From Anaeramoeba ignava BMAN (taxonomy: Eukaryota > Protista > Anaeramoebae), in contig JAPDFW010000061.1 in NCBI GenBank assembly GCA_028826165.1, positions 186,001 through 250,000 of the forward strand: 64,000 nucleotides of DNA. Direction: 5' to 3'. The stretch's first letter is position 1; each line of letters begins with the position of its first letter. A program made the position numbers and the translations under genes. The notes under the pieces were generated by a model, which searched no databases, was not told the DNA's origin, and was given only the letters and a program-made list of their open reading frames with translations. Below, piece by piece: positions 3,991 through 64,000 of this stretch.

Positions 3991-6949
3991 ATGAGTTTTT
4001 GTTCATTTTGCAAAAAACAACAAACAAACGGACATTATTGCTCACAAAATGGTCCATTTATTTGTTTTAAATGTCTTATTGCAACAAATACAAGCAATAA
4101 AAACTTTTCTTGTCCAATTTGCAAAAAACTAATAAACCTTACTTCTCTTATTGAAAATGTAAAAACAAAAGCAAAAAACAAAATAACAAAATAACACTTT
4201 TTTTTTGAATAATTTCTCTTTCTTTCTTTCTTTTTATTAAATCCAAATTCAAATTAAAAAATAAAATTAAAATCAAAATCAAAATTAAAATTAAAATTAA
4301 AATTAAAATTAAAATTAAAATTAAAATTCAAATTAAAATCAAAATTAAAAATTAAAATTAAAATCAAAATTTAAATTAAAATCAAAATTAAAAATCAAAA
4401 TCAAAATCAAAATTAAAATTAAAATTAAAATCAAAAATTAAAATTAAAATTAAAATTAAAATTAAAATTAAAATTAAAATTAAAATTAAAATCAAAATTA
4501 AAATTAAAATTAAAATTAAAATTAAAATTAAAATCAAAATTAAAATCAAAATTAAAATTAAAATTAATATTAAAATTAAATTTAAAATTAAAATTAAAAT
4601 TAAAATTAAAAATTAAAATCAAAATCAAAATTAAAATCAAAATTAAAATTAAAATTAATATTAAAATTAAAATCAAAAATTAAAATCAAAACCAAAATTA
4701 AAATCAAAATTAAAATCAAAATTAAAATTAAAATTAAAATTAAAATTAAAATTAAAATTAAAAATTAAAATTAAAATTAAATAAATAGCAACAAAATGAG
4801 GATTCAAGAATGTGTTCTTTTTTACAAAAAGGATGGTGTAATTCTTTTCAACATTATAAAGCAAGTGATAAAACACAGCATCCACCAGATCGGATAGTAT
4901 GTCCTAAATTTTATAAAGGGGAATCATGTTATTTATCTAATTGTCCATATGCTCATCCAAGAGCTGAAGATTTTTTGGAATGGAGAAATAAAATTTTAAG
5001 TCAAAATCTTGGTGTTAGAGATGAGAAAAAAACTAATTGTTTTTTCCTTGATCAAAGAAAACAAACCCAGAGCAAAAGTAAGAAAAATCAAAATTAAAAA
5101 TTAAAATCAAAATTAAAATTAAAATCAATATCAAAATTTAATTCAAAATAAAATTTCAATTCAAAATTTAATTCAAAATTCAAAATTCAAAATTAAAATT
5201 CAAAATCAAAAATTAAAATTAAAATTAAAATCAAAATCAAAAATCAAAATCAAAATCAAAATCAAAATCAAATTAAAATTCAAAAAAACTAAAAATTAAA
5301 ATAAAAATCAAAATTAAAATTAAAATAAAAATCAAAATATAAAAAATCAAAATCCAAAATTTTTTTATTAAAAATAGAATGCAAAAATGATACTTCTTTC
5401 ACTTATATTTCTTCCAAACGTTGTGAAGATAAAATGTGTCCATATGAACATAAAAATTTTCCTTTTGAACTAAAATCAAAAATGGATGATTATATTATTA
5501 AATATTTAAATCCCAATCAAAACGATTCAAATCAAAATGATCAATATTTTAGTCAATTTTCTAATAAAAATCAAAAACCAAAACAAAATTTATTTTCTCA
5601 AGGAGATCAAATTTCCAATCAATATATCTTTCAAGATCAAAGCACAAATCAAATGTCAAATCAAATGTCAAATCAAAATCATAAACCAAGAGTATCACTC
5701 GATAAAGATTTATTTATTCAACCAAGATCAAGAAGTTCAAAAGATTTAATTCAAAAAAATCTGGTTTATGGTGCAAAACAATATCGGAAACAATTTCAAG
5801 AAAATATTTCCACTCATTTTCAAAGCAATAATCAACAAAATTTCAATTCAAAACTCTATTCAAATCTAAATTCAAATCTCTATCCAAATATGAATTCAAA
5901 TTCAAATCAAATTCAAATTCAAAATCAAAATCAAAATCAAAACTCAAATCGATATCAAATGAAAATTGAAAATTCAACAAAAAATAGAAATCAAAATCAA
6001 AATCCAATTCAAAATCAAAATCAAAATCAAAATCCAAATCAAAATCCAAAATCAAAATTCAAATCAAGCACAAATGTATTCAAAATCCACATCTGAATCT
6101 GAATCTGACACAGATTCAAAAAAAAATCGAATTCCAATTCAAAATCAAAATCCACATTCAAATTCACAGTCAGATTCAGATTCGGATTCAGACTCAGATT
6201 CAGATTCAGATTCAGATTCAGATTCAGATCCAGATTCAGATCCAAATTCAAATTCAGATCCAAATTCAAATTCAAAATTAAATTCAAAATCAAAATCAAA
6301 TTCAAATTCAAAACCACAATCATATCCAAAGCCTCATTCAAAATCACCCTTAAATTCAAAACAAAATCCAATTCAAAATCCAATTCAAAATCCAATTCAA
6401 AATCCAATTCAAAATTCAATTCAAAATCCAATTCAAAATCAAAACCAAAATCCAATTCAAAATCAAATTCAAAATTCAACTTCTTATTCATTTAAACAAG
6501 CAACCGAAATTGAAGAATTATTCATTCGGCATTTATGGGAACAAAACACAAACATGCAATCAAAACAAATCATCTTAATTCAAATTATTGAAAATCGTGA
6601 GTTTAAATACAAATCTTTAGCAAAAATTGAGAAAATTAAAAAAACAGAAAAATTTCAAACGAATCTTTTTGGATTTTATGGAGCAAAATCAAACGAAATT
6701 AAAGAAATTTGCGAAAATGGATTTTCTTTTCAAAAAAAAAACCCAAAAAAAAATTTGCATTTTTATTTGAATTCTTCTTCTTCTATCAAAAATTGTGATA
6801 ATTCAAAAACTGTTGTTTTATGCCAATTATCTGTTTTTCAGAATGATTTACCATCTATTTCAACTTCTCATCACATTTCAACTTCTCATCACATTTCCGT
6901 TTCAAATCCTTTCAAACTTCGTCCTTTAGGTTTAATTACTTTTAATTAA
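3991..6949 (+). CDS. ZF-array gene 1: RING-like + CCHH/CCCH zinc fingers + low-complexity linker + degenerate PARP-like domain
   Basis: Exons 3991-4158, 4789-5077, 5378-6949 with GT-AG introns (phase 0, phase 1) joining in frame. One +1 shift near 6046-6051. C-terminus has FGFYGAKSNEIKEICENGF..LHFYLNSS..VVLCQL..LRPLGLITF. Confidence 0.8.
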
Positions 6950-7170
6950 AATTTTCTTTTATTTTTTTTTTTAATTTCAATTCAAACAAGAAAAAGAAAA
7001 AATAAAAGAATTAAAAAGAATTAAAAAGAATTAAAAAAAGAAATAAAAAAAAGAAAAAGAAATAAAAAAAAGAAAAAGAAATAAAAAAAGGAAAAAGGAG
7101 ACACTTTTTTTAATAATTTTTTTTTCCTTTTTTTTTTCCTTTCATTTTTTATTTTTATTTTTATTTTTAA

Positions 7171-9280
7171 ATGTTTCAACGATTTAAGCCACCTCAACCA
7201 AATCGAAATCAAAATAGAGACAGGAGACGATCAATTCAAAACAATCAAAATCAAAACAATCAAATTAGAAAACAAGATTTTGGCTTTCAAGAAGTTCAAT
7301 TTTTTGATTCTCTTTATTCAAGTTGGGAAACATATTATGGTTTTGAAAATGCTCAAATTACACTTTATATACAAAGATCTGAAATGAAAATTGAATGCAA
7401 AACAGAAACTGTAATTTAATTTAATTTAATTTAATTTTTCCCCTTTTTCTAATTTCAAAAAATAAAAGCAACAAAATCCTTTAAATTTCACAATTAAAAG
7501 CGGAACTACTCATGAATTAAATGGAATAAGATATTCAGGACAACCTTCTTATGTTGAATGGAATGATGGAAATGATAAATTTCGAATTAAATTTCATGAT
7601 TATTTTTATGCCAAATCACTTGATGATGAAATTGAACATTTAGGAAATCAAAGAAGAAGACAAACAATTGAAATGTCACAAATTGATATAACAAGGATGA
7701 TTTTAATTGATTCGATGAAAGGAAGATATTTACTTAATGGAAAGGAAAAAATTGCCCAAGCAAGAATTTTGGGAGAAAACCTTATAATAACTATTCTTCA
7801 TGTAGCTCAACAAACTAAATTTACATTTACTGGAGATCAAATGATTGAAATTGCTGATAATCATATTAGTTTCGAAGATGGAACACATTTTAATTTTTCT
7901 GAAAAAAATGAAGATTTTAAAATTTCGGTTCGAAATTCATGTTCCAAACAATCAGAAGAAAACGAAACCAAAAATATGACTATTGAATTTTTAAAAGTAG
8001 GATGTGATTATAATGATTTTGAACTTGAAGAGCAGTTTGAGATGGATTCTTTCCATATTTACTCAGAAAAAGATGTTGGATTTACAATCAATGAAACAAA
8101 TTATTTTCCACCTATTGGATGGATAAGATTGAAAATGAGAAATCAAGGAAATAAGGATGTGAGTAAATGGTCGTATGGATATCATGGAACAAAACACCAA
8201 AACACGAAATCAATTGTGCAAAATGGGTTAGTTATTCCTGGAAATAAAACACAAGATGGAACAATTGTTGAAATTGTAAAAGGACATATTCCAAATCAAA
8301 AGCATATTTATGCCTCTCAATCGTATCTTTATGCTTCTCATCCAATTTATGCTTTACCTGTGCTCTTTGAATACAACGATAAAACCTATTATGTTCGAGT
8401 AATGTTTCAAATAAGAGTTGATAAAGTGAATATAACTCAAGAACAAACAATAGGATGGCCAGATAATGTCCCTCTTGATACTCAAGTCCCGAATGATTCC
8501 CTTGAATGGATTATTTTCTCTTCAGATCAAATTGTTCCTTATGGATTGCTCATCAAATTTGATGAAGAAAATCCCGATGAAATTTTCCAAAAAATCAAGG
8601 AAAATCGGTTGGAAAAACACAATTGGAGCCATAGAACAACAGTAAAGGAAACTGAAGAGAATATTAATTTGAATAAAGAAGCGCCAAAAGAGCAAAAAAA
8701 GAAAATTCTTTGGGTTGATGACGAACCCGAAAATAATGAAGGTATAATTGAAGTGGCAAGAAAAGTAGGATTAGAAATCACAACCGTTATTGATACAAAC
8801 ACAGCAATTTTAAAGTATCAAAGAAATCCAGCAAAATGGTTTCTGATCATCAGCGACATGCGCAGATTCGAAGTTAGATCGGGACATCCCAATGAAAAAA
8901 GAGAATACATAACTGCAGGATTAACACTTACTGAATTAATCAGAAAAATCAATAAAGATGTTCCCATTTGGATTTATTCACAATACACTCGAGCTCATCC
9001 CCATTATCATTCTATTTGCTTCCACAAAGGTGTTTCAGAAGTCGTTAATGTTTCCAGAATTTTGACACATTTTTTCCCTTATGACCCCATTTATCAAAGC
9101 AATGATTATCCCTCAGTTCAAGGTTTAGAGGATTTCCAAGATTCTTCAAATGAATTTTTAGATGTTGAATATGGTCAAATTTTCAAAGTTATTATTCCTT
9201 TCGAAAATTCGTGTTTTGTTGCTGATAATGATAATAAAACAACTGGATTTGTTCTAAATAAATTAATTCAGCTCTTATAA
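7171..9280 (+). CDS. ADP-ribosyltransferase (PARP/NEURL4-like) + response-regulator receiver + SH3-like protein (~683 aa)
   Basis: Exons 7171-7410 and 7469-9280 (58-nt GT-AG intron, in frame). ART motifs YHGT..SIVQNGL..IYASQSYLYA..FQIRV..LEWI..IVPYGLLI (~8100-8560). Receiver ILWVDDEPENN..IISDMRR..AGLTL..PIWIYS (~8700-9060). SH3-like GLEDFQ..FLDVEYGQIF..GFVL (~9105-9277). Confidence 0.85.
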
Positions 9281-9424
9281 TCAAAAAAAAAACCAATTCA
9301 AAACAAATTCCACTTTTCAATTTAATTTTCCAATTTCAAAAAAGAAAAGAAACTTTTTTTAATTTTAAGAAAATAAAGTGGAATTTTTATTTTTCCTTTT
9401 TTATTTTTCATTTTTTTTTCAAAA

Positions 9425-12093
9425 ATGGTTGATGTTAAAGAAGCTTTAAAAAGTTTAGAAAAAACCAAAGAATTTGTGAAAAAATATCAAGTTGATTATG
9501 CATTACCTGTATATTAAAAAAAAACACACAAAAAAACAATTTTTTTATTTAAATTAGCAAATTATTTAAATAGGATGTAAATTAAGAATTTTTTTTCCTC
9601 TTTTTTATTAATTGGATTTATTTATTTTCTCTTTAGGATCCATCTCCTCTTTATCAAGCAATAAGCGATTCAGACCATTATGAACAGAAAAAAGAAATTA
9701 TTAAATACCTTCTCAAGAAACATGCAAACGTTAATTTTATACATGTATAAAAACTATTTTAAAAATAAGAAATCAATTAATTTTTAACAAAATATTAACA
9801 AAATAAAAAAATTTATAATTTTAGTCCGATGTAGTTATTTAGATTTTTAAATAATGTTTAAAAGTGAATTGTTAATTGTTAATTTTTAATTCTTTTTCAT
9901 TTACATTTTTTTAGTCTGTATTTTTGCTTAAATAAAATCTTTTTTTTTTAATGATTTGATTCAAAAAAATTCAAAATATCGAATATATTTCATTTATTTA
10001 ATTAAAATAGAAAGATACACCTTTGCATTTAGCAGTTGAAGATCAAAATGAGGAATTGGTTGATTTACTTTTACAATACAACCCAGATCCAACTATTAGA
10101 AATGTATAAATTATTGAATTAAATTATTGAATTAAGTTATTGAATTAAATTTTTGAATTAAATAGCAAGTAAAAATAAATATAAAGTTAAATTCAAAGAA
10201 AATTCAAACAATTAATTATTTTGATATTAATTTTTATAGGATGGTCAAATTCCACTCCATTTAGCAGATGAAAATTATTTCATTTTCAAAAAATTAATAA
10301 GATATATGCTCAAAAATCACAAAGAGGCAATATACACTAAAGATGTATTTAATCAACCAAAAATATTTGAAAAACAAATTTCAGTTTAATCGATAAATCA
10401 AAAAAAATATTTTAGAATGTAAATTTTTTACTTAATTAATTGATTAATTAATGATTAAATTTTTTTATATAAATTGAAATTATAGGATGTAAATTTTGTT
10501 TCCATTTTAAAAAAACATTTTGATTTTAAATTCCTTTATACTTTAAATCATTTTAGGATGAAACACCTTTTTATAATTTAGAAAAAAATCAGAAAAAAGA
10601 AATTGAAGAAATAATAAAACGTAAATTAATTAATTTCAATACCTAATTTTTTTCTATTAAACGGTAACTAAATTTTTATTTTATTTATTTAGAAGAGGAA
10701 AGTAAATCAAAAGATAATAAAAAAGATTCTGGAAACAAAAAATTTATTCCAAAATCAATAACAGAATCAACAGCAGAATCAACAACAGAATCAACAACAG
10801 AATCAACAACAGAATCAACAACAGAATCAACATCAAGTGATACAGATCAAAAAGAAAAAGCAAAACAAAAAGAAAAAGCAAAACAAAAAGAAAAAGCAAA
10901 ACAAAAAGAAAAATCAGATTCAAATTCAGATTCAGATTCAGATTCAGAATTAGATCAAAATCAAAATCAAAATCAAAATCAAAATCGAAACCAAATTCAA
11001 AATCAAGATTCAAATTCAAAAATTCAACAAATTATAAACCAAAATCAAAAAGAAAATCAAAATAAAATATTTGAAGGATATAAATCTCTTTTAAATTCAA
11101 ATACTTTTTATGATTTTAAAATTATAATTGATTCTAATAATACAGAAATTAAATGTCATAAAGCAATTCTTTATTCTCAACTTCAATTCTTCAAAAATTA
11201 TTTTAAAGAACAAAATTCAAATGAATTTCATTTTGAAATAGAAAATGAAAAAGATGTGAAAGAAGTTATCAATTTTATTTATACAAATCAAATTAATTTA
11301 AATTTAAATAATCTAATTGAAATTTGGTTTATTTCACAAAAATTAGAATATGAATTATTAATTAATTTAACTGAAAAAATCATTTTAAATCAAATTAATG
11401 AAAATTTAATTTTAGAAAGTTTAATCAAAAGTGAAAAACTTCAAAGAAACAAAATTAACAAAAATTTTAAAGAATTTATTCAAAAAAACTTTCAAAAAAT
11501 AATTTTAAGTGATAAAATATTTGAATTATCAATTCATAAAATTGAAGAATTAATTGAAATTGGAATTGAAAATCAACAACCAACATTTGAATTACTTTCT
11601 TTATTAACAAATTTTTCAAATAGATATGAAAATTTCCAAATACAAAAACAAAATCAAAATCAAAATCAAAATCAAATTCAAAATCAAAATCAAAATCAAA
11701 AATCAAAATAAAAAGAAAACAAAAATCAAAATTCAAAATCAAAATCAAAATCAAATTTCAAAAGAATTACCAATTTTAAATCAATTTAGTTCTTTTTTGA
11801 CAAATATTGAAAATATATTATCAATCCAACAAAAACAAGAACTCAAAAATTCACCAAATAAATTCATTAATTTTATTTCCCAAACACATCAAGAAGTTGA
11901 AAAATCAAAACAAACAACAATTTCCACAATTTTATCAAAATCAAAACGAAAATCAAAATCAAATTCAAATTCAAAATCAAAACCACAATCAAAATCAAAA
12001 CCACAATCAAAGTCAAATTCAAAGTCAAATTCAAATTCCGTTTCAAATTCAAATTCAGATTCAGATTCAGATTCAGATTCAGATTCAGATTAA
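9425..12093 (+). CDS. Ankyrin-repeat + BTB protein, 12 predicted exons including six micro-exons
   Basis: Exons 9425-9508, 9574-9576, 9637-9744, 9825-9830, 9915-9917, 10011-10103, 10166-10168, 10240-10344, 10416-10418, 10486-10488, 10557-10620, 10693-~12093. Ankyrin motifs SPLYQA, TPLHLA, IPLHLA, TPFY. BTB motif DFKII..IKCHKAILYSQ..VINFIYT. One +1 shift near 11700. Confidence 0.8.
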
Positions 12094-12451: not shown

Positions 12452-15014
12452 ATGGATTGTTTTATATGCAAAAAAAAAACAAAAAAAGGTTATTCTTGTA
12501 AAAAATTTGGCACATTTTATTGTCTTAAATGTCTTCGTATGTTGAATACAGGAGCAAAAGAGGTCAAATGTCCATCTTGTGGTAGAAAAAAAAAATTAAT
12601 TCAACCAAATAAAGTTCAAGTAAACAAATTAATTAAAATCAAATTCAAAATATAAATCAAAATCAAAACCAAAATCAAAGTCAAAATCAAAATCAAAATC
12701 AAAATTAAAATCAAAATCAAAATCAAAATCAAAATCAAAATTAAAATCAAATTCAGAATCAAAATCAAATTCAAATTCAAAATCAAAATTAAAATCAAAA
12801 TCAAAATCAAATTCAATATCAAAATCAAAATCAAAATCAAAGTCAAAATCTAAATTAAAATCAAAATCAAAATTAAAATCAAAATTAAAATCAAAATCAA
12901 AATTAAAATCAAAATTAAAATCAAATTCAAATTCAAATTCAAAATCAAATTCAGAATCAAATTCAAATTCAAATTCAAAATCAAAATCAAAATCAAAATT
13001 AAAATCAAAATCAAAATCAAAATCAAAATCAAAATCAAAATCTAAATCAATATCAAAATCAGAATCAATATCAAAATCAAAGTCAAAATCACTTTCAAAG
13101 TCAAAATCACTTTCAATTCCAAAGTCAAAATCCAAATCACTTTCACTTTCAAAGTCAAAATCACTTTCAATTTCAAAGCCAAAATCAAAATAAACCGAAA
13201 ACAAATTATGATTCGCAAATGTGTTCTTTTTTACAACAAGGATGGTGTAATTCATATCAACATTTTAAAAAAAATGATCCAATAGAACATCCACCAAGTA
13301 AAATAGTATGTCCTAGTTTTTATAAAGGAGAATCATGTTATTCATATAATTGTCCATATACTCATCCAAGAGCTGAAGATTTTTTGGAATGGAGAAATAA
13401 AATTTTAAGTCAAAATCCAAATGTTGAAGATATTAAAAAAACTAATTGTTTTTTCCTTGATCAAAGACCAAAAACTCATAGCATAAGTAAGAAAAATCAA
13501 AATCAAAATTAAAATTAAAATTAAAATCTAAATCAAAATCAAAATCTAAATATAAATACAAATCTAAATCAAAATTAAAATCAAAATCAAATTCAAAATC
13601 AAATTCAAATTCAAAATTAAATCCAATATAAATCAAAATCAAAATTAAAATTAAAATTAAAATCTAAATCAAAATTAAAATTAAAATCTAAATTAAAATC
13701 TAAATCTAAATATAAATCAAAATGAAAATGAAAATCAAAATTCAAATTTAAAATCAAAATCAATATCAAATTCAAAATATAAATCAAAATCAAAATCAAA
13801 ATCAATATCAAAATCAAAATCAAAATCAAAATCAAAATCAAAATCAAAATCAATATCAAAATCAAAACCAAAATCAAAATCAAAACCAAAATCAAAATCA
13901 AAATCAAAATCAATTTCAATTTCAATTTCAATTTCAAAATCAATTTCAATTTCAAAATCAAATTAAAAATTAAAATCAATTTCAAAATCAAAATAATTCA
14001 ATATCAAATTAAAAATTGAAAATTAAAATTAAAATTAAAATCAAATTCAAAACTAAAATCATAATTAAAATCAAAATCAAAATCAAAATTAATTCCAAAA
14101 TTAAAATTAAAATTAAAATCAAATTCAAAACTAAAATCATAATTAAAATCAAAATCAAAATCAAAATTAATTCCAAAATTAAAATAAAAATTCAAATCAA
14201 AATCGGAAAAAAATTTTTAAACATTTTTTTGAATTTTAAATAGAATGTCGAAATGAACAATTAAGTTATGATCATTATGGTAATCCTTACGCTTATTCAA
14301 GTCGTTCAAATCACTGCACAAATAAAATGTGTCCTTATGAACATCCTAAATTTCCATATGATTTAAAATCAAAATTTAAATACGATAATTTCAAATATCA
14401 AAATAAAAATCAAAATCAAAATCATCATCATTATCATTCCCATCAAAGTCAAAGTTATTACCATCAAAGTCAAAAGGAAAAAGAAAATGAAAATGAAATC
14501 AAAGATAAATTTAAAACTCCATTTCAAAATTATCTTCAAAATTCAAATCAAATTCAGCTTCAAAATCCAAATCAATTTCAAAATAATTCAAAATCAAAAT
14601 CAAAATCAATTTCAAAATAATCAAAATCCAAATCAATTTCAAGATGATTCAAATCAATTTCAAAATAATGAAAATCAAAATCAATTTCAATTTCAAGATG
14701 ATTCAAATCAATTTCAAGATGAAAAAAAGAAACACAAAAAGAAAGATAAAAAAGATAAGAAAGATAAGAAAGATAAAAAAAAGAAAAAGAAAGAAAAAAA
14801 AGAAAAACAAAAATCCAAAAACAAAAAGAAACACAAACATAAAAAAGAGAATCAAATCCAAACTCAGAATCAAGATTCAAATCAAAATCAAAATCAAAAT
14901 GAAAATCAAAAAATCAAAATTAAAATTAAACATAAACATAAACATAAACATAAAAAAGAAAAGAAAAAATCAAATGAAAATGATAATGAAAATGATAATG
15001 ATAATCAAAACTAA
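12452..15014 (+). CDS. ZF-array gene 2: RING-like + CCCH block + Lys/His-rich tail
   Basis: Exon 1 12452-12619. Exon 2 ends 13486 (acceptor uncertain, possibly 13063; core starts 13219). Exon 3 starts 14244. Frame change near 14600. Confidence 0.75.
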
Positions 15015-18310: not shown

Positions 18311-18464
18311 ATTCCACTTTTTCAACTTTCAAAAAAGAAAATTAAAAAACAAAATAAAAATAAAGAAAAAAGAAGAATTTTTATTTTTCGTTTTTTAATT
18401 TTCCGAATTTTCCTTTTTTTTTCATTTTTCTTTTTCATTTTTTTTTCCTTTTTTATTTTAAAAG

Positions 18465-29018: not shown

Positions 29019-29089
29019 AATTTAATCCAAAAAAAAGGAATTTCCTTTTAATTTCCTTTTAATTTTCAAAAAAGAAAAATGAGAAAAAA

Positions 29090-35000: not shown

Positions 35001-35104
35001 ATAAAAAAGAAAAGATGAATTCTGATCAAAATCAAAATCAAATTCAAAATCAATCGAAAACAAAAAGAAAACATGGAAAAAAACATGGAAACAAAAAAAA
35101 ATAA
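32098..35104 (+). CDS. RING-finger (C3HC4) Ser/Thr or TKL-type protein kinase with low-complexity HK/NQ tail
   Basis: RING CPICFE..CKKDHSICEIC..CPLCR. Kinase motifs AYGGSADIY, VVKK, HRDLKPENIL, SDFG, SAPE, DIFS. Possible intron from GT 33101. Tail (ORF 33791..35104) is homologous to those of genes 4 and 5; the junction is uncertain. Confidence 0.85.
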
Positions 35105-47100: not shown

Positions 47101-47342
47101 AACAAAATCAAAATCTAAATCAAAATCTAAATCAAAATCAAAATCAAAATCAAAATCTAAATCAAAATCAAAATCAAAATCAAAATCAAAATAAAAATCA
47201 AAATCAATCAAAAACAACAAAACATCAACACAAACACAAAAGAAAACCTAAAAAAGAAAATTATAATCAAAATCAAAATCAAAATAAAAATCAAATTCAA
47301 TCAAAAACAACAAAACATCACAAACACAAAGAAAAAAATTAA
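41184..47342 (+). CDS. ZF-array gene 8: RING-like + K/Q/E coiled-coil-like region + two CCCH blocks + long tail
   Basis: Exon 1 41184-41336, intron 41337-41432. CCCH block A ~42655-42919 / 43014-; block B ~43621-43885 / 43980-. Several frame changes within hexamer repeats. Confidence 0.7.
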
Positions 47343-53780: not shown

Positions 53781-53909
53781 AATTTAATCCAAAAAAAAAG
53801 GAATTTTCATTTAATTTTCATTTAATTTCCTTTTAATTTCCTTTTAATTTCCTTTTAATTTTCATTTTAATTTCCTTTTAATTTCCAAAAAAAAAAATGA
53901 GAAAAAAAT

Positions 53910-54585
53910 AAAGAAATAAAATTAATTAAAATATTTTATTTATTAATTTATTTAATTTTTAATAATAATTAATTTAATATTTTGCAATAAAATTAATCAA
54001 GAAAGGATTTAAAAAATAATTTATTATTAATATTAAATTAAAATTATTAAAAATAAAGAAATAAAATTAATTAAAATATTTTATTCATTATTTTACTTAA
54101 TTTTTAATTATAATTAATTTAATATTTTGCAATAAAATTAATCAAAAAAGGATTTAAAAAAGAATTTATTATTAATATTAAATTAAAATTATTAAAAATA
54201 AACAAAAATTAATTAAAATATTTTATTTATTATTTTATTTAATTTTTAATTATAATTAATTTATTATTTTGCAATAAAATTAATTAAAAATGATTTTAAA
54301 AAGAATTTATTATTAATATTAAATTAAAATTATTAAAAATAAAGCAAAATTAATTAAAATATTTTATTTATTATTTTGTTTAATTTTTAATTATAATTAA
54401 TTTATTATTTTGCAATAAAATTAATCAAAAATGATTTTAAAAAAATTTATTATTAATATTAAATTAAAATTATTAAAAATAAAGAAAAAATTAATTAAAA
54501 TATTTTATTTATTATTTTATTTAATTTTTAATTATAATTAATTTATTATTTTGCAATAAAATTAATCAAGAAAAGGATTTAAAAA
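53910..54585. repeat. ~143-bp AT-rich tandem repeat, 5 copies (same family as 29090-31200)
   Basis: Units at ~53918, 54063, 54205, 54346, 54488. Confidence 0.93.
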
Positions 54586-55496: not shown

Positions 55497-58400
55497 ATGA
55501 ATAATTGCACTATTTGTAATAAACAAAAACCAAAAGGATATCAATGCAAAAAATGCCAACAATTTGCTTGTTTTCAATGTATTATTGCAAAAAGTACAAA
55601 TCAAAAAGTTTTTGAATGTCCATTTTGTCGTTCTCCAATCAACATTATTAGGCAAATGAGAAAAGTAAAAAAATCAAAATTCAAATTAGAATATCAATAT
55701 AAATATCAATATCAATATCAAAATCAATATCAAAATCAAATTCAATATCAATATCAAAATCAATATCAAAACCAAAATCAAAATCAAAATCAATATCAAA
55801 ATCAAAATCAAAATCAAAATCAAAATCAAAATCAATATCCAAATCAAAATCAAAATTAAAATTAAAATCAAAATCAATATCAAAATCAAATCAATATCAA
55901 TATCAAAATCAATATCAATATCAATATCAATATCAATATCAAAATCAATATCAAAATCAATATCAAAATCAATATCAATATCAAAATCAAAATCAAAATT
56001 AAAATCAAAATCAAAATCAAAATCAAAATCAAAATTAAAATCAATATCAAAATTAAAATCAAATTTAAAATCAATATCAAAATCAAATTCAAAATCAAAT
56101 TCAAAATCAAAATCAATATCAAAATCAATATCAATATCAATATCAATATCAAAATCAAAATTAAAATTAAAATTAAAAAATTTAAAATCAATATCAAAAT
56201 CAAAATCAATTTCAAAATCAAAATCAAAATCAAAATCAAAATTCAAAATTAAAATTAAAATTAAAATCAATAACAAAATCAAAATCAAATTCAAAATTAA
56301 AATCAAAATCAAAATCAAAATCAAAATCAAAATTAAAATTAAAATCAAAATCAATATCAAAATCAATTTCAATATCAAAATCAAAATCAAAATCAAAATC
56401 AAAATCAAAATCAAAATCAAAATTAAAATCAAATTCAAAATCAAAATTAAATTCAAAATCAAAATTAAAATTTAAAATTAAAATCAATATCAAATTCAAA
56501 ATATAAATCAAAATCAAAATCAATATCAATATCAAAATCAAAATCAAAATCAAAATCAATATCAAAATTAAAATCAAAATCAAAATTAAAAATAAAATTA
56601 AAATTAAAATCAAAATTAAATTCAAAATCAAAATTAAAATTAAAATCAATATTAAAATCAATTCCAAATTAAAATTAAAATTAAAATTAAAATTAAAATC
56701 AAAATCAAAATCAAAATCAATATCAATATCAATATCAAAATCAAAATTAAAAATAAAATTAAAATCAAATTCAAAATCAAAATCAAAATCAAAATCAAAA
56801 ATAAAATTAAAATCAAAATCAAAATCAAAATCAAAATTAAAATCAAATTCAAAATCAAAATTAAAAATAAAAATAAAATTAAAATTAAAATCAAAATTAA
56901 AATCAAAATCAAAATTAAAATTAAAATCAATATTAAAATTAAAATCAAAATCAATATCAAAATCAAAATCAATTTCAATATCAAAATCAAAATAAAAATT
57001 AAAATTTAAAATTAAAATCAATATTAAAATTAAAATTAAAATCAAAATCAAAATCAAAATCAAAATTAAAATTAAAATTAAAATCAAAATCAAAATCAAT
57101 ATCAAAATCAAAATCAATATTAAAATCAAAATTAAAATCAAAATCAATATCAAATTTAAAAATGAAATTAAAGGGAAATAGAGTCATGTGTCGTTTTTTA
57201 AAAAGAGGATGGTGCAATTCTTATCAACATTTTAAAGCAAATGATATCAATTCTCATCCATCAAAAAAAATAGTATGTCCAAATTTTTATAAAGGAGAAT
57301 CATGTAATTCATCTGATTGTCCATATACTCATCCAAGATTTGAAGATTTTTTGGAATGGAGAGGTCAAATTTTAAGTCAAAGTCCTAATATTCACGAGCA
57401 AAAAAAAATTAATTGTTTCTTTCTTGATCAAAGAAGGAAAAGATCAAGAAAAAGTAAGAAAAATAAATCATATCAAGTTTCTTTATTTAATTTATTTTTT
57501 ATTCTCAAAAAATTTTTTTAAATAGCCTGTCCAAATGAAAAGGCAACATTATACTTTTTTAACCAGAAGCATTGCGATAAGAAAAACTGTAAATATCAAC
57601 ATAAAAGATTTTCATCTGATTTAAAAGAGCAAATGGATTTTTTTGTCTTAAAATACCAATATCCAGATCAATATCAAATCCAAAATCAAATTCAATATCA
57701 AAATCAAATTCAAAATCAAATTCAATATCAAATCCAAAATCAATATCAATATCAATATCAAAATCAAATTCCAAATCCAAATCCAAATCCAAATCAATAT
57801 CAAAATCAATATCAAAATCAAAATCAAAATCAAAATCAATTTCAAAATCAAAATCAAAATCAAAATCAAAATCAAAATCAAAATTCAAATCAATATCCAA
57901 ATCAAAATTCAAATCAAAATCCATATTCAAATCAAAATCAAAACCAAAATCCAAATCCAAATCAAAATCAAAACCAAAATCCAAATCCAAATCAAAATCA
58001 AAATCAATATCAAAATCCAAATCCAAATCAATATCAAAATCCAAAATCCAAATCAATATCAAAATCCAAATCAAAATCAATATCAAAATCAAAATCTAAA
58101 TCCAAATCAATATCCAAATCAAAATCAAAATCAAAATCAAAATCATTCAAAATCAAAATCAAAATCAAAATCAAAATCAAAATCAAAAATCAAAATCCAA
58201 AATCAAAATCAAAATTCAAATCAATATCCAAATCCAAATCAATATCAAAATTCAAATCAAAATCAAAATCAAAATCCAAATCTAAATTCAAACCAATATC
58301 AAAATCAAAATCAATATCAAAATCAAAATCAATATCAAAATCCAAATCCAAATCAATTTCAAAATCAAAATCTAACTCAATCTCAATATCCAAGCCAATA

Positions 58401-59085
58401 TCAAATTCAATATCCGAACCAATATACAATTCAAAATCAATTCCAAAATCAAGACGAATTGAGTTCAGAAACAGGATCCGAATCAGAGTCAGAGTCAGAA
58501 TCAGAGTCAGAGTCAGAATCAGAATCAGAATCAGAATCAGAATCAAAATCAAAATCAAAATCAAAATCAAATTCAAAATCAAAATCAAAATCAAATTCAA
58601 AATCAAAATCAAAATCAGATTCAAAATCAGATTCAAAATCAAACAAATCTGATTCAAAAAAATCTGAATCAAAAAAATCTGAATCAAAAAAATCTGATTC
58701 AAAAAAATCTGATTCAAAAAAATCTGATTCAAAAAAATCAGAATCAAAATCAAAATCAAAATCAAAATCAAATTCAATATCAAAATCAAATTCAAAATCA
58801 AAAAAATCTGATTCAAAAAAATCTGATTCAAAATCTGAATCAAAAAAATTTGATTCAAAAAAATCTGAATCAAAAAAATCTGATTCAAAAAAATCTGAAT
58901 CAAAAAAATCAAAAACAAAATCTGATTCAAAAAAATCTGATTCAAAAAAATTTGATTCAAAATCTGATTCAAAAAAATTTGATTCAAAATCTGATTCAAA
59001 AAAATCAAAAACAAAATCAAAAACAAAATCAAACAAATCTGATTCAAAAAAATCCAAAAAATCCAATTCAAAAAAATCAAATTGA
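55497..59085 (+). CDS. ZF-array gene 10: C4C4 RING-like + CCCH block + SDSKK-repeat tail
   Basis: Exons 55497-55664 (CTIC..CKKC..CFQC..CPFCR), ~57174-57453, and 57526 onward. Frame changes in the tail; stop at 59085. Confidence 0.75.
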
Positions 59086-59233
59086 AACAAATTCAATTCA
59101 TAAAAATCAAATTTTTAAAAAGGATTTTTATTCATTTTCTTCTTCTCAAAAAAAATAAATAAAAATAAATAAAAAATTGTCCGATTTTTGTTTTCATTTT
59201 TTTTTCCATTTTTAATTTTATATTGTTGAAATA

Positions 59234-62200
59234 ATGAATTATGTTTGCTATTTAAAATTAAAATTTAAAACCAAATTTCAAATTATTTAATTGATATTAT
59301 TTATTTGGATTAAAAATAAAAAAAGTACAATAATTCAGGAATGTGTGTTTATTTACAAAATGGATGGTGTAATTCTTATAAGCATTATAAAGCAAATAAT
59401 AAAACAGAACATCCACCCGATATGATAGTATGCCCAAAATTTTATAAAGGAGAATCATGTCATAACCTTAATTGTCCATATACTCATCCAAGAGCTAAAG
59501 ATTTTTTGAAATGGAGAGGTCAAATTTTATGTCAAAATATCAATGTTAGAGAAATTAAAAAAACTCATTGTTTTTTTCTTGATCAAAGACAAAAAATTTG
59601 TAAAAAACGTAAGAAAAATAACACCAAAATAATATCAACTCAATCAATACTCAAAATATTCAAAATATCCAAAATATTTAAAATAAATATTCAAAATATT
59701 TAAAATAAATATTCAAAATATTTAAAATAAATATTCAAAATATTTAAAATAAATATTCAAAATATTTAAAATAAATATTCAAATTATTTAAAATAAATAT
59801 TTAAAATAAATATTCAAAATAAATATTTAAAAATATTTAAAATAAATATTTAAAATAAATATTCAAAATAAATATTTAAAATAAATATTCAAAATATCCG
59901 AAATATCCAAAATAAATATTCAAAATAAATATTTAAAATAAATATCCAAAATAAATATTCAAAAATAAATATTTAAAAATAAATACCTAAAAATAATCAA
60001 AATAAATATTTAAAATAAATATTCAAAATATCCAAAATAAATATCCAAAATAAATATTCAAAATAAATATTCAAATTAAATATCCAAAATAAATATCCAA
60101 AATAAATATTCAAAATATTCAAAATAAATATTCAAAAATATTCAAAATAAATATTCAAAAATATTTAAAATAAACCAAAATAAATATTCAAAATATCCAA
60201 AATAAATATTCAAAATAAATATTCAAATTATTTAAAATAAATATTTAAAATAAATATTTAAAATAAATATTCAAAATAAATATTCAAAATAAATATTTAA
60301 AATAAATATTTAAAATAAATATTTAAAATAAATATTTAAAATAAATATTTAAAATAAATATTTAAAATAAATATTTAAAATAAATATTTAAAATAAATAT
60401 TTAAAATAAATATTTAAAATAAATATCCAAAATAAATATCCAAAATATTTAAAATAAATATTCAAAATATTTAAAATAAATATTCAAAATATTTAAAATA
60501 AATATCCAAAATAAATATTTAAAATATCCAAAATAAATATTTAAAATAAATATTTAAAATAAATAATCAAAATAAATATTTAAAATATCCAAAATATTCA
60601 AAATAAATATTTAAAATAAATATTCAAAATAAATATTTAAAATAAATATTCAAATTAAATATTTAAAATAAATATTTAAAATATCCAAAATAAATATTTA
60701 AAATACCTAAAATATTCATAAAAAATTTTTTTAAATTTATAAATTGTCAAAGCATGCAAAAAAGAAAAAACAATCCGTGAACGTTTTCGACATTGTAAAG
60801 TTGAGATGTGTCCATATGAACATCCTAGGTTTCCATCAGCATTAAAATCAAAGATGGATAATTATGTTTGGAAATATCTTCCTCAAAATCAAAATCAAAT
60901 TCAAATTCAAATTCCAATTCCAATTCCAAATCCAAATCAAAATCCAAATCTAAATCCAAATCTAAATCCAAATCCAAATCTAGATCCAAATCTAATTCTA
61001 ATTCAAAATCAAAATCAAATTCAATTTCAAAATCAAAATCCAAATCAAAATCAAAATCAAAATCCATATCCAATTCAAAATCCATATCCAATTCAAAATC
61101 CATATCCAATTCCAATTCAAAATCAAAATCCATATCCAATTCCAATTCAAAATCAAAATCAATTTCAAAATCAAGATTCCCATTCAGATTCAAAACATCA
61201 TCGTTCATATTCAAAACATCATCATTCAGATTCAAAACATCATCATTCAGATTCAAGATCAAATTCAAAACATCGTTCAGATTCAAAACATCATCATTCA
61301 GATTCAAGATCAAATTCAAAAAATCATCGTTCAGATTCAAAACATCATCATTCAGATTCAAGATCAAATTCAAAACATCGTTCAGATTCAAAACATCATC
61401 ATTCAGATTCAAAAAATCATCATTCAGATTCAAGATCAAATTCAAAACATCGTTCAGATTCAAAACATCATCATTCAGATTCAAGATCAAATTCAAAACC
61501 GAAACTGAAACCGAAACCAAGATCAAATTCAAATTCAAAACATCATTCAGATTCAAATTCAAAATCAAATCCAAATTCAAGATCAAATTCAAAACCAAGA
61601 TCAAAATCAAATTCCAGATCAAATCCAAATCCAAATTCAAAAAAAGAACAAACAAAGGAAGAAATTCTAAGTTCTCAATCACCATTAATATATACTCTTT
61701 CAAAATCAAAATCAAAATTTAAATCAAAATCAAAATTTAAATCAAAATCAAAATCAAAATCAAAATCAAAATCAAAATCAAAATCAAATTCAAAATTTAA
61801 ATTAAAATTAAAATTAAAATCAAAATCAAAATCAAAATCAAAATCAAAATCAAAATCAAAATCAGAATCAGAATCAGAATCAGAATCAGAATCAAAATCA
61901 AATTCAAAATCAAATTCAAAATCAAAATTTAAATTAAAATTAAAATTAAAATCAAAATCAAAATCAAAATCAAAATCAAATTCAAAATCAAAATCAAAAT
62001 CAAAATCAAAATCAAAATCAAAATCAAAATCAAAATCAAAATCAAAATCAAAATCAAAATCAAAATCAAAATCAAAATCAGAATCAGAATCAGAATCAAA
62101 ATCAAAATCAAAATCAAAATCAAAATCAAAATCAAATTCAAAATCAAAATCAAAACCAAATTCAAATTCAAAATCAAAATCAAAATCAAAATCAAAATTT

Positions 62201-62341
62201 AAATCAAAATCAAAATCAAAATCAAAATCAAAATCAAATTCAGACTCTCAAAAAATAAACTTTACAAGGAAAAATGTTAAGACAATACCAACAGTACAAC
62301 CATCTCATGAAATAATCATTCCATCAGGAAATTCAGATTGA
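59234..62341 (+). CDS. ZF-array gene 11: RING-less CCCH protein with SDSKHHH and SK repeats
   Basis: Predicted exons 59234-59242 (MNY), 59326-59608, 60753-62341, all in frame. Could alternatively start at ATG 59341. Confidence 0.75.
59650..60715. repeat. ~13-bp minisatellite (AAAATAAATATTT/AAAATAAATATTC with 9-bp variants) in intron 2 of gene 11
   Basis: Direct reading; purest at 60290-60420. Confidence 0.9.
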
Positions 62342-62622
62342 AATTCAGATTGAAATTAAAATTAAAATTAAAATTAAAATTAAAATTAAAATTTAAATTA
62401 AAATTAAAATTGAAATTAAAATTAAAATTAGAATTAAAATTAATTTATAAAATTAAAATTTGGAAAAAAATTCCTTTTTTGATTGAAAAAAGTAAAAAAG
62501 AAAATCAAGAATTTCCACTTTATTTTTCTCCTTTTTTTTTTTTCCTTTTTTATTTTTTTTTTTCCTTTTTTTATTTTTCATTTTTTTCCTTTTTTTTTAT
62601 TTGAAATTATTATTTAAAAATA

Positions 62623-64000
62623 ATGAATGTTTGTGATATAAAATTTAAATTAAAACGACAAAACAAACAAAAAAAAACTAAGATAAATTAAAATTTTTTT
62701 TATAAAAAAACAAAATAAATAAAAAATAAAACAAAAACAGTCAAACAATGATCCAATGATGTGTTCTTATTTAGGACAAGGATGGTGTAATTCTTATGAT
62801 CATTATAAAACAAATGATACCAATTTACATCCACCGAATAGAATAGTATGCCCTAATTTTTATCAAGGTAAACAATGCAATACATCTGATTGTCCTTATG
62901 TTCATCCAAGGTTTGAGGATTTTTTGGAATGGAGAAATGAAATTTTAAGTCAAAATCAGGAAGTTAAAGATATTAAAAAAATTAATTGTTTTTTTCTTGA
63001 TCAAAGAGAAAAAGCATCTACAAAAAGTAAAATCAAAAAATCAAATTCAATTCCAATATTAAAATCAATATCTAAATCAAAATCAATATTAAAATTAAAA
63101 TCAAATTCAATTTCAATATTAAAATCAAAATTAAAATAAAAATCAATTTCAATATTAAAATCAAAACCAAAATCAAAATAAAAATCAATATCAAAATCAA
63201 TATTAAAATTAAAATCAAAATAAAAATCTAAATTCAAATTCAAATCAAAATAAAAATCAAAATAAAATCAATATCTAAATTCAATATCAAATTCAAATTC
63301 AAATTAAAATTCAAATTAAAATTCAAAATCAAAATAAAAATCAATATCAAAATCAAAATCAAAATCAAAATCAAAATCAAAATCAAAATTTAAATCAATA
63401 TCAAAATCAAAATCAAAATTAATATAAAAATCAATATCTAAATCAAAATCTAAATTCAAAATCAAAATCAAAATCAAAAATCAAAACCAAAATCTAAATT
63501 CAAATTAAAATCAATATCAAAATTAAAATAAAAATCAAATTCAAATTCAAATTCAAATTCAAATTCAAATTCAAATTCAAAATAAAAATTAAAATCAAAA
63601 CCAAAATCAAAATCAATATTAAAATCAAAATCGAAATTAAAATTAAAATCAAAACCAAAATCAAAATCAAAATCAAAACCAAAATCAAAATCAAAATCAA
63701 AACCAAAATCAAAATCAAAATAAAAATCAAAATCAAAATTAAAATTCAAAAATATTATTTATAAATTCAAAATAGAATGTCCAAATGAAAAATCAAAATT
63801 TTTTGGTTTTTTTGAAAAACATTGTGACACGAAAATGTGCAAATATGAGCATAATAATTTTCCATCTAAATTAAAATCAAAACTTGGAGATGCAATTTTG
63901 AATTATAAAACATCGAAAAAATCCAAACCACCAAATCCAAATCAGAATCAAAATCAAAATTCAAATCAAACTCAATTTCAGTTTCCAAATCCAAATCAAA
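62623..64000 (+). CDS. ZF-array gene 12: RING-less CCCH protein, 3' end outside window
   Basis: Predicted exons 62623-62628 (MN), 62741-63026, 63776-64000+ (CPNEKSKFFGFFEKHCDTKMCKYEH). Confidence 0.75.

Follow-up and report, generated by a model that had tools for sequence, protein, structure and literature searches.

A head-to-tail array of about 11–13 transcription units, rather than a clean set of 12, occupies the + strand of the 64,000-nucleotide stretch of Anaeramoeba ignava (Metamonada) DNA analysed here (the window). The array is best explained as a young, lineage-specific tandem expansion of units that join a RING-like domain to a three-finger module, the products being putative RNA-guided ubiquitin-ligase adaptors (probability about 0.6). 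The basic unit would run from a RING-like exon 1 through an exon 2 encoding a CCHH-like finger, a CCCH finger and a helix, to an exon 3 encoding finger 3, followed by a long disordered tail that is N/Q- and His/Lys-rich. In units 5 and 6 a BTB domain takes the place of this tail or comes after it, as a dead PARP-like domain probably does in unit 1.

Organization of the array

The conserved CCCH exon occurs 12 times on the + strand of the window (finger-2 Cys at 4900, 13309, 16474, 20003, 24341, 37221, 42742, 43708, 48686, 57276, 59431 and 62849), and a motif scan revealed no true copy on the − strand. The 12 blocks align without gaps at 66–92% identity with 29 invariant columns; a 13th copy is located just beyond the window end, such that 13 copies span about 62 kb. 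RING-like first exons number 13, with ATGs at 3991, 12452, 15317, 18465, 23111, 27449, 35361, 35589, 35834, 36063, 41184, 47765 and 55497. All 13 retain the ATG, seven Cys and a phase-0 donor, which was identified by script as GTAA in 12 cases and by eye as GTACAA in exon 15317. The 12 third-finger exons are entered via a phase-1 intron with a GTAAGA-type donor. Intron phases are uniform across the array (0 after exon 1, 1 after exon 2), exon-2 donors are intact in 12 of 12 copies, as are all exon-3 fingers, and the recount agrees with the 12 CCCH blocks, 13 RING-like exons and constant intron phases of the original prediction. A RING-like exon is missing from three CCCH copies, the RING-like exon at 27449 stands without a CCCH exon, and one CCCH exon (unit 7) is preceded by four RING-like exons. 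Satellite blocks lie within the array, and the unit tails are of the (AAAATC)n low-complexity type, where exon/intron structure is unreadable.

All features described below are on the + strand. Exon 1 of unit 1 (3991–4158; seven Cys and a His, ATG, GTAA donor in phase 0 at 4159) is of a long-loop RING-like subtype and matches the profile from its own genome at 4.7e-15. It is followed by the exon 2 core (4810–5077, donor G at 5078, phase 1), comprising the CCHH-like finger, the C-x8-C-x4-C-x3-H finger and the helix, and by the third CCCH finger of exon 3 (5380–5463). Unit 2 (12452–15011) consists of a RING-like exon (12452–12619), a CCCH core (13219–13486), a finger 3 with a 22-residue loop (14246–14356) and a low-complexity tail. 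Unit 3 (15317–18307) has a RING-like exon from 15317, a CCCH core (16384–16651), finger 3 (16860–16946) and an N/Q- and His/Lys-rich tail with a shared terminal motif at 18281. In unit 4 (18465–22855), the RING-like exon (18465–18626) and CCCH core (19913–20180) precede a finger 3 (20540–20650) that resides within a 776-codon ORF (20528–22855) of low complexity with His/Lys repeats, to which the Pfam search assigned no family.

Unit 5 (23111–26652) carries a RING-like exon (23111–23275), a CCCH core (24251–24518) and an ORF (24604–26652) encoding both finger 3 and a BTB domain (45.7 bits, residues 263–365). In unit 6 (27449–28953), the CCCH exons are deleted and the RING-like exon (27449–27613) leads directly into a BTB ORF (27697–28953; 43.9 bits), with 93% DNA identity between 27668–28854 and 25088–26286. 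Unit 7 opens with a cassette of four RING-like exons (35361–36224; exons at 35361–35522, 35589–35750, 35834–35998 and 36063–36224), each with its own ATG and phase-0 donor and separated by gaps of 64–83 nt, which the public model P0001 strings together in series. The unit continues at 37131–40951 with a CCCH core (37131–37397), finger 3 (37492–37581) and a low-complexity ORF of 928 codons (38168–40951) with internal 0.7-kb repeats.

Unit 8 (41184–43468) has a RING-like exon from 41184, a CCCH core (42652–42919) and finger 3 (43016–43102). Unit 9 (43618–47339; CCCH core 43618–43885, finger 3 43982–44065, N/Q/S-rich tail) is a recent 0.97-kb duplicate of exons 2 and 3 of unit 8 (95% protein identity); it lacks its own RING-like exon and may be part of unit 8. 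Unit 10 (47765–49667) comprises a long-loop RING-like exon (47765–47932), a CCCH core (48596–48866) and a finger 3 (49128–49310) with a 46-residue loop. Its CCCH copy (48686) bears +1 and +2 indels that scramble 17 codons; both fall within homopolymer stretches and together add up to +3, so errors of assembly may account for them. Unit 11 (55497–58649) has a RING-like exon (55497–55664) in which the His is replaced by Tyr, a CCCH core (57186–57453), finger 3 (57528–57614) and a low-complexity tail. No RING-like exon was found in units 12 and 13, where the CCCH cores (59341–59608 and 62759–63026) have their own ATG start: unit 12 (59341–62338) continues with finger 3 (60755–60835) and a His/Ser/Lys-rich tail, and unit 13 (62759–64000) with finger 3 (63778–63864) before the window end is reached.

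A RING-like domain and a three-finger module

Exon 1 is predicted to encode a RING-type, two-zinc domain. Its profile matches RNF4 (1.8e-5, or 3e-10 for a tandem construct), TRIM37 (2.6e-5 over positions 3–47) and MDM4/MDM2 (5e-4), as well as Not4 at E 0.05, and the AF2 model (pLDDT 79) has beta-beta-alpha topology, with a Foldseek top list made up nearly entirely of RING domains at E above 0.3. The exon does not reach the cut-off of any Pfam RING model (21 bits at best versus 27), its zinc ligands are shifted (H-x-C rather than the usual C-x-H), seven residues precede the next Cys pair compared with 2–3 in RINGs, and two copies have Tyr in place of His.

Together, exons 2 and 3 are modelled as a compact module of three fingers (AF2 pLDDT 84, pTM 0.79), the first being C-x7-C-x4-H-x8-H and the second a canonical C-x8-C-x4-C-x3-H, while the first loop of the third ranges from 12 to 46 residues across copies. 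The module profile weakly matches the fingers of CPSF30, Nab2 and MBNL (E 0.002–0.04), Pfam CCCH matches are sub-threshold, and no structural match to the fold was found in the PDB or ESM Atlas. Neither in sequence nor in fold was a specific likeness to the RNA-binding domain of ZAP found.

Accessory domains and interspersed genes

Three BTB domains in the window exceed the Pfam cut-off of 20.5 bits, at 44–46 bits (10668–11708, 24604–26652 and 27697–28953). They belong to a cassette with 85–93% DNA identity that stands behind three different N-termini, and a BACK match is weak in a related BTB cassette. The PARP-like segment at 6440–6946, in which the NAD-binding His is replaced by Tyr, is probably the C-terminus of unit 1 and is predicted to be catalytically dead; its junction with exon 3 of unit 1 requires a weak intron or a frameshift. 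The Pfam search of the window itself returned no PARP match. Language-model features nevertheless gave a lead to PARP, and the segment belongs to a 16-member family in the genome, of which 11 of 12 aligned members match PF00644 (Pfam PARP). Against solved structures the family profile finds the ZAP PARP-like domain best (3.3e-13), followed by PARP12 (2e-8), such that the evidence for a PARP-like identity of the segment comes from its family alone. The analysis found no WWE domain.

The swapping of accessory domains that had been proposed holds firmly for BTB and probably for PARP, whereas the kinase and ankyrin genes are of separate families interspersed in the array and do not supply accessory domains to the RING-CCCH proteins. 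The ankyrin gene (9420–11708; Ank 31.7 bits at 10011–10106, BTB 46.2 bits within 10668–11708) shares the BTB cassette, with 85–86% DNA identity to the cassettes of units 5 and 6. The kinase gene (32098–33795) is a single ORF that combines a canonical RING (RING motif; RING models 2.6e-5 to 1e-3) with a protein kinase domain (Pkinase 2.2e-50). An ORF of 604 codons (7466–9277) is unassigned to a family and has three paralogues on contig C24; a weak receiver-like part scores E 0.011–0.025, and language-model features alone point to a possible ADP-ribosyltransferase-like middle, for which sequence searches gave no PARP support.

Young copies under constraint

The copies are young (mean dS 0.20) with an omega of about 0.76, which is high for functional domains. 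The array copies are not decaying: exon 2 contains no stop codon in 11 copies, where 14–21 would be expected (P 1e-6 to 5e-10), and its eight zinc-ligand codons are all invariant (P 3e-9). Residues between the finger-2 ligands are variable. Per-site rates among paralogues, proposed as a check, placed no site convincingly above neutral, and the pattern fits a constrained core with neutral drift. DNA identity of 75–93% extends through the introns. Exon 1 is far more diverged across copies than exon 2, and units 2 and 7 are near-identical in exon 2 but strongly different in exon 1. Recent duplication (dS ~0.2), exon shuffling and one unit without CCCH exons bear out the suggested birth-and-death turnover.

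Relatives of the array

As originally supposed, the family is undescribed: the block is contained in public models for two units only, both annotated "hypothetical protein", and CCCH, RING, PARP, BTB and ubiquitin all go unmentioned in the paper on the Anaeramoeba genome. Profile searching across 1.84 billion proteins, as had been recommended for the exon-2 block, indicates that the family is lineage-restricted, yielding outside A. ignava only a few weak metagenomic matches, some of them low-complexity noise. Among transcriptome-derived peptides of 50–159 or 206–656 residues, none containing the block was found, and the RNA runs shared only 5–6% of words.

Within the genome, the CCCH module heads the PARP-domain proteins P0005, P0008 and P0010, as it does in one metagenomic eukaryote, and in P0012 and P0013 it comes after a canonical RING. 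The predicted connection between CCCH and PARP is thereby substantiated. At least 26 PARP loci are present, several in tandem arrays and some led by the CCCH module. Diverged pairs of RING-like and CCCH domains on C131, C1:733-735k and C62:494-495k argue that this architecture is older than the array. One relative, P0015 (C62:485-495k), is matched in part by the transcriptome-derived protein P0011 and has a C4C4-like ligand pattern that recalls the Not4 RING.

Possible function

We suggest that the three-finger module, like the fingers of CPSF30, Nab2 and MBNL, binds single-stranded RNA, and that the RING-like domain or BTB brings in ubiquitin-conjugating machinery (an E2, or Cullin-3). Coupling the two would make the proteins RNA-guided ubiquitin-ligase adaptors whose specificity may differ from copy to copy, with the cell's own mRNAs and transposon, viral or symbiont-derived RNAs as candidate targets. 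Unequal crossing-over, gene conversion and the loss of exons would make the array grow and change. Selection would hold the frame and zinc ligands, with some half of the remaining residues drifting near the neutral rate.

It is possible, though on balance doubtful, that the proteins are ordinary post-transcriptional regulators of the cell's own mRNAs (decay, translation, granules), like CNOT4, Makorin, Roquin and Unkempt, with the array having arisen neutrally as unequal crossing-over acted on a region rich in repeats, and the copies being partly redundant. RING and CCCH pairing is typical of such regulators, and granule-forming RNA-binding proteins often have disordered tails that are N/Q- and His/Lys-rich. 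The closest sequence matches of the module, the presence of Not4 among the RING matches, the near-neutral rate of variable sites and the older, dispersed single-copy relatives of like architecture, one with a transcriptome-derived match, all point this way. However, 13 young copies with a hypervariable loop and with ends that vary between BTB, PARP-like and none would be unusual for housekeeping regulators, and outside the genome no homologue was detected other than a few weak matches from metagenomes. That the array is mostly dead DNA, a recent amplification in which all but perhaps one or two copies are non-functional (untranscribed, or pseudogenes in decay), is quite improbable. The omega value, the frameshifted copy 48686, the missing CCCH or RING-like exons, the interrupting satellites and the scarcity of public models and transcriptome-derived peptides would fit such decay, but the stop-free exon 2, its invariant ligand codons, and the retained first-exon features, exon-2 donors and exon-3 fingers oppose it, and the homopolymer indels of copy 48686 (net +3) may not be biological.

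The original prediction favoured an innate-defence repertoire, in which CCCH modules would sense viral, transposon or symbiont RNA and the RING-like, BTB or PARP-like ends would direct ubiquitination or ADP-ribosylation-linked restriction, by analogy with ZAP/PARP12 and TRIM proteins. We consider this unlikely, and a set of receptors aimed at foreign RNA or at the control of symbionts speculative. In very AT-rich genomes, genes rich in low complexity often expand in tandem with no part in defence. Moreover, no site evolves convincingly beyond neutral expectation, the fingers do not specifically resemble the RNA-binding domain of ZAP, WWE was not found, and the literature searched yielded no Anaeramoeba virus. 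Consistent with defence are the young mosaic array that gains and loses domains, the hypervariable finger-3 loop (12–46 residues) and varying finger-2 inter-ligand residues, the proximity of the PARP-like family to ZAP and then PARP12 among solved structures, and the abundance of PARP loci, some CCCH-headed and several in tandem. In addition, PARP genes of the ZAP/PARP12 clade are outlined as rapidly evolving in animal host-virus conflicts (PMC4038475), and the Anaeramoeba host is described as carrying bacterial symbionts (PMC11550330).

Comparison with known systems

ZAP (ZC3HAV1/PARP13), PARP12 and PARP7 are animal CCCH-WWE-PARP proteins of PARP clade 3E. The array resembles them in placing CCCH fingers ahead of a PARP-type domain, an arrangement that its module also adopts at the head of intact PARP-domain proteins of A. 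ignava, and its PARP-like copy shares the Tyr for the NAD-binding His with ZAP. Unlike ZAP and PARP12, the array proteins have no WWE and no specifically ZAP-like fingers, carry a RING-like N-terminus, and end in a PARP-like domain in only one of about 13 units, via a candidate junction. Because clade 3E is reported to be animal-only (PMC2964712), the resemblance would reflect convergence or an unrecognised older origin, orthology not being shown.

Makorin, Roquin, Unkempt, CNOT4 and RNF113 likewise combine RING-type and CCCH domains in one protein, and the likely shared logic would be RNA recognition coupled to ubiquitination; the C4C4-like pattern of P0015 adds a likeness to CNOT4. The array proteins are related to these ligases only by generic RING and CCCH similarity, and differ in having the RING-like domain first, then a compact three-finger module with unusual ligand spacing, in the absence of ROQ, RRM and KH domains, and in belonging to a tandemly amplified family of one genome and a few metagenomic sequences. 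TRIM and other expanded RING families share the RING-type N-terminus, variable recognition part, tandem arrangement, recent duplication and gain or loss of domains. In the array, however, searches for B-box, coiled coil and SPRY were negative, a zinc-finger module rather than SPRY forms the recognition part, and positive selection is not demonstrated. With CPSF30, Nab2 and Muscleblind, the best matches of the module profile, the array shares tandem fingers and conserved aromatics; the matches are weak, finger 1 is C-x7-C-x4-H-x8-H, finger 3 has a long variable first loop, and the predicted compact fold is without a solved look-alike. The BTB domains of units 5 and 6 resemble those of Cullin-3 adaptors and may recruit Cullin-3, but are joined to CCCH or RING-like domains rather than to Kelch, MATH or C2H2.

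Organization of the array

The window corresponds to C62:186001–250000 of a 42.8-Mb assembly comprising 147 contigs; its G+C content is about 20%, its standard-code ORFs are rich in N, Q, K and S, and its contig bears the locus tags M0811_06344 and M0811_06354. We find that it harbors a young, mosaic tandem gene family in which reading frames and zinc ligands are maintained. A motif scan recovers the 12 co-oriented CCCH copies of the original prediction, all on the + strand, and these blocks can be aligned without gaps at 66–92% identity with 29 invariant columns. The predicted 13 RING-like exons are likewise present, each being a Cys-rich exon 1 of ~55 residues (n = 13) that has an ATG, conserves seven Cys and carries a GTAA-type donor in phase 0, and a whole-genome profile search returns exactly these 13 in the array. 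The intron phases are constant, as had been proposed, with phase 0 after exon 1 and phase 1 after exon 2, such that exon 2 of every copy ends with a single base of the split codon followed by a GTAAGA-type donor. Exon 3 encodes an additional CCCH finger and is conserved (n = 12), while a thirteenth exon-2/exon-3 pair is located 1.5 kb beyond the end of the window and corresponds to the public protein model P0002.

The observation as a whole is thus borne out and its counts are right, although the units differ in their makeup. Unit 7 carries four RING-like exons ahead of one CCCH exon, all four of which are placed in series by the public model P0001, and such serial use is plausible because the exons are separated by gaps of only 64–83 nt and an AG immediately precedes (5') each ATG. 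In unit 6, a BTB domain follows the RING-like exon and the CCCH exons are deleted. The CCCH copies of units 9, 12 and 13 (finger-2 Cys at positions 43708, 59431 and 62849, respectively) have no RING-like exon, and two of the three begin at an ATG shortly before finger 1. The CCCH copy of unit 10 (finger-2 Cys at 48686; 48740–48870) contains +1 and +2 insertions in A- and T-runs, which jointly restore the frame and leave the 17 intervening codons scrambled, with stops among them. This copy is either a pseudogene with a real disabling mutation or reflects an assembly error at long-read homopolymers.

Recent duplication and maintenance of the copies

For exon 2, pairwise comparisons yield a mean dS of 0.20, a dN of 0.15 and a median omega of 0.78, and counting on the tree gives an omega of 0.76. 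Moreover, DNA identity of 75–93% continues through the introns and flanks. The copies are young, with recency accounting for much of the apparent conservation. They are not decaying, since 14–21 stops would be expected among the 188 inferred substitutions and none is observed (P 1e-6 to 5e-10), and since the eight zinc-ligand codons remain unchanged throughout (P 3e-9). Non-synonymous changes concentrate at approximately half of the sites, among them the inter-ligand positions of finger 2. In a site-wise counting analysis of exon 2 on a FastTree tree, individual sites accumulate up to eight non-synonymous changes, which fits the neutral Poisson expectation, with no site convincingly above it.

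Exon 1 is much more diverged, with dN reaching 0.7 and omega exceeding 1 for some pairs, which is not significant over 43 codons. Units 2 and 7 are nearly identical in exon 2 and very different in exon 1, a contrast suggestive of gene conversion or exon shuffling. Most unit tails are N/Q-rich and His/Lys- or Ser/Lys-rich and contain no known domain. We note that the tails of units 3 (18281–18307) and 7 (40925–40951) share a ten-residue His/Lys-rich terminal motif and that alternating Lys/His repeats are common to several tails, which suggests that the low-complexity tails are coding and related, beyond simple-sequence noise.

The RING-like first exon

RING domains employ eight zinc ligands in the cross-brace order C-x2-C...C-x-H-x2-3-C-x2-C...C-x2-C. 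The ligands of exon 1 follow the pattern C-x2-C-x7-H-x-C-x7-C-x2-C-x9-12-C-x2-C, where the pair formed by ligands three and four is shifted and inverted with respect to the RING order. Seven Cys are invariant or nearly so, and the His is present in 11 of the 13 copies and replaced by Tyr in the other two. Single copies remain under the Pfam RING cut-offs (zf-C3HC4_3, 17–21 bits versus a 27-bit cut-off). A profile built from all 13 copies matches solved RING E3 domains among PDB sequences, namely RNF4 (1.8e-5) and TRIM37 (2.6e-5, nearly full length), followed more weakly by MDM4 (5e-4) and then MDM2. An AlphaFold model of exon 1 adopts a beta-beta-alpha arrangement (pLDDT 79), and its Foldseek neighbors are nearly all RINGs, none of them significant (E >0.3). 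The hydrophobic residue following the first Cys is mostly retained, and the position after the last Cys, a linchpin site in many RINGs, varies. Based on the profile matches and the predicted fold, we call exon 1 RING-like, with a shifted third/fourth ligand pair, and suggest that the domain may have E3 activity.

The array differs from the TRIM family (RING-B-box-coiled coil) in that its exons contain no B-box above cut-off; the only B-box matches are confined to two first exons and lie at chance level below cut-off, namely PF00643 (E 0.65) and the ANCHR-like B-box PF22586 (E 0.038). In addition, Pfam-type searches of the window ORFs detect no coiled-coil or SPRY family in any ORF.

A three-finger CCCH module

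CCCH fingers conform to C-x7-8-C-x4-5-C-x3-H. Finger 2 has the canonical pattern in 12 of 12 copies (C-x8-C-x4-C-x3-H), finger 3 reads C-x12-46-C-x4-C-x3-H, and finger 1 is non-canonical (C-x7-C-x4-H-x8-H). The exons were searched singly, with P0002 taking their place whenever exons 2 and 3 had to be considered jointly. PF00642 matches the block with E 0.07–0.14 (12.6–13.6 bits), under its 20.5-bit cut-off, and among solved proteins the module profile weakly recovers the fingers of CPSF30, Nab2 and Muscleblind (E 0.002–0.04; CPSF30 0.0017). Several CCCH models match the relatives P0006 and P0012 weakly and mostly under cut-off, with P0006 exceeding the cut-offs of PF10650 (zf-C3H1) and PF21803 (Nab2-zf4). 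Structure prediction for residues 1–135 of P0002, based on 20 aligned relatives, yields a compact and confident model (pLDDT 84, pTM 0.79). Foldseek on the PDB, VIA-align wide and the ESM Atlas returned no usable fold neighbors of the module, which proves neither a new fold nor absent kinship. The ZAP-type N-terminal CCCH RNA-binding domain (PF22628) is matched only at chance level (E 0.18), and ZAP chains are absent from both the PDB sequence matches and the fold matches of the module.

The module appears to be a private version of tandem CCCH fingers of the RNA type, bearing no specific tie to the RNA-binding domain of ZAP. The first loop of finger 3 spans 12–46 residues in the array versus 4–7 in distant relatives, and is the most plausible candidate for a specificity element.

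BTB, PARP-like and other accessory parts

In addition to RING-type and CCCH-type domains, two units of the family hold BTB domains, and a PARP-type relative is present at one place. Of the mixed accessory modules originally predicted, the BTB domains stand, whereas the kinase and ankyrin modules belong to genes of other families lying in the array. BTB/POZ (PF00651) is matched at 46.2, 45.7 and 43.9 bits, exceeding the 20.5-bit cut-off. These represent one BTB cassette with 85–93% DNA identity, which is found behind the ankyrin gene (9420–11708), unit 5 and unit 6, and the BTB of unit 5 lies within the same 683-codon ORF as finger 3. The kinase gene encodes a canonical RING and a Pkinase domain in one 566-codon ORF (32098–33795, + strand); a His/N/Q-rich ORF follows, the whole stretch spanning 32098–35104 (+).

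The original prediction had also placed PARP modules in the array. Pfam PARP finds no match in the window, including when 6440–6946 is searched alone, and hhalign against a three-sequence PARP profile aligns just the HGT...GF motif, with a probability <2%. However, 6440–6946 has 15 genomic paralogues, and 11 of the 12 aligned members match Pfam PARP (best 6e-16). When compared with solved structures, the profile of this family identifies the PARP-like domain of ZAP (3.3e-13), then PARP12, 14, 15 and 10. A PARP relative is therefore recognized at 6440–6946 only, and through its own family profile rather than from the window sequence by itself. Here, a Tyr replaces the NAD-binding His of the family, as is also the case for ZAP in the same alignment, and the PARP-like domain is probably inactive. 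The junction with exon 3 of unit 1 falls in low-complexity sequence and requires a weak intron or a frameshift, so that a RING-like/CCCH/PARP-like fusion in unit 1 is a plausible candidate.

Neither the unit 1 ORFs nor the relatives with CCCH-PARP architecture (P0005, P0008 and P0010) show a WWE domain, and we therefore do not place these genes in the CCCH-WWE-PARP clade, which has been reported as confined to animals (PMC2964712). With respect to ZAP, PARP12 and PARP7 (PARP clade 3E), the 6440–6946 family may hold a counterpart of their C-terminal mono-ART-type PARP domain; WWE is absent from the sequences just named, and the CCCH module is not of the ZAP type. The genome contains 28 Pfam PARP matches and at least 26 PARP loci, several in arrays. 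PARP loci are located, for example, on C78:56–87 kb (a nine-copy tandem array), C14:56–66 kb (three CCCH-PARP genes), C35:139–141 kb (a pair) and C93:109–114 kb, and several genomic PARP genes begin with the CCCH module of the window array.

The 604-codon ORF at 7466–9277 (+) has three tandem paralogues (L014–L016) on C24:749–760 kb with 69–74% identity. Its middle part contains an HGT...GL motif and gives a language-model lead to PARP clusters, and its residues 414–509 weakly match a receiver domain (E 0.011–0.03). Sequence profiles provide no support for PARP in this ORF, leaving the language-model lead as the sole indication of an ADP-ribosyltransferase.

Distribution and relatives

The exon-2 profile obtains 14 matches among 1.84 billion representative proteins, of which the two strong ones are both from the array and the weaker ones are mostly other A. 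ignava proteins, together with three sequences from metagenome or run assemblies. Two matches, to tick and coral proteins, resemble low-complexity noise. No matches from A. flamelloides or A. pumila are present in this search, which is suggestive only. The original prediction did not recognize a described family, and we found no description of it in the literature: CCCH, RING, PARP, zinc finger, BTB and ubiquitin all go unmentioned in the paper on the Anaeramoeba genome and symbiosome, and the A. pumila preprint is silent on CCCH, zinc finger, PARP and ubiquitin.

Among the weak matches to the exon-2 profile, the module resides N-terminal to a PARP catalytic domain in P0005, P0008 and the metagenomic P0010, and after a canonical RING in P0012 and P0013; the finger module is thus reused by PARP-domain proteins elsewhere in the genome. 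P0010 (622 residues), whose 2-kb contigs lack introns and have an ordinary base composition (L020 and L021, from JGI samples 3300030740 and 3300030629), combines the three-finger module with a PARP domain that is intact (H-Y present), indicating that the module and its link to PARP also occur outside Anaeramoeba ignava.

Within the genome, the block matches 33 places, comprising the array, a close copy standing apart on C106, and diverged copies on C1, C14, C24, C62:485–494k, C78, C93, C103, C109 and C131. Diverged RING-like exons adjoin diverged CCCH blocks on C131, C1:733–735k and C62:494–495k. In P0015 (C62:485–495k), an older form, the RING-like domain, an N/Q-rich linker and the three fingers are combined in one protein, the C-terminus of which is matched by a transcriptome-derived sequence. 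On the basis of P0015 and the diverged pairs, the architecture is older than the array, which represents a recent burst of one branch.

A possible role in RNA surveillance

The array family is a variation on known kinds of architecture, namely RING + CCCH, CCCH + PARP and BTB adaptors, and both RING + CCCH and CCCH + PARP proteins are central in animal RNA surveillance and antiviral defence. We infer that the fingers would bind RNA, that the RING-like and BTB parts would recruit the ubiquitin machinery and that specificities would differ between copies. A role in defence is attractive by analogy, given the abundance of PARP loci, several of them arrayed, and given that animal PARPs of this clade are reported to be in conflict with viruses (PMC4038475).

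The most far-reaching proposal, to which we assign a probability of roughly one in six, is that a metamonad independently built an animal-like intracellular surveillance of nucleic acids. A diversifying set of RNA sensors, each with three CCCH fingers and a hypervariable loop in finger 3, would be coupled to effector ends of the RING-like, BTB or (dead) PARP type. Backed by the CCCH-PARP arrays elsewhere, the system would police viral, transposon or symbiont RNA in a protist for which contact with bacteria is obligate. A deep-branching anaerobic protist has an unannotated, fast-duplicating family with a private CCCH module and RING-like, BTB and PARP-like ends, such that RNA-guided ubiquitin/ADP-ribose architectures have either been assembled repeatedly or are older than thought. 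The array provides concrete candidates for how Anaeramoeba handles foreign or symbiont RNA, and shows that a sizeable gene family is for the most part absent from this genome's public annotation.

Transcript data and neighbourhood of the array

In the RNA sequencing runs, word shares are just 5–6%, with one run of unknown kind at 0.33. Transcript-derived peptides of 50–159 and 206–656 residues, the lengths covered, include none with the block, a weak negative.

A satellite with a unit of ~143 bp and a G+C content of 6–12% occurs twice inside the array, at 29086–31203 (14.8 copies, 93% match) and 53904–54585 (4.8 copies), where it marks two breaks, ahead of the RING-kinase gene and of unit 11, respectively. 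At 2–3901 on the (-) strand, immediately upstream of the array, are two tandem RCC1-repeat + BTB genes that share 88% DNA identity over 1.7 kb.
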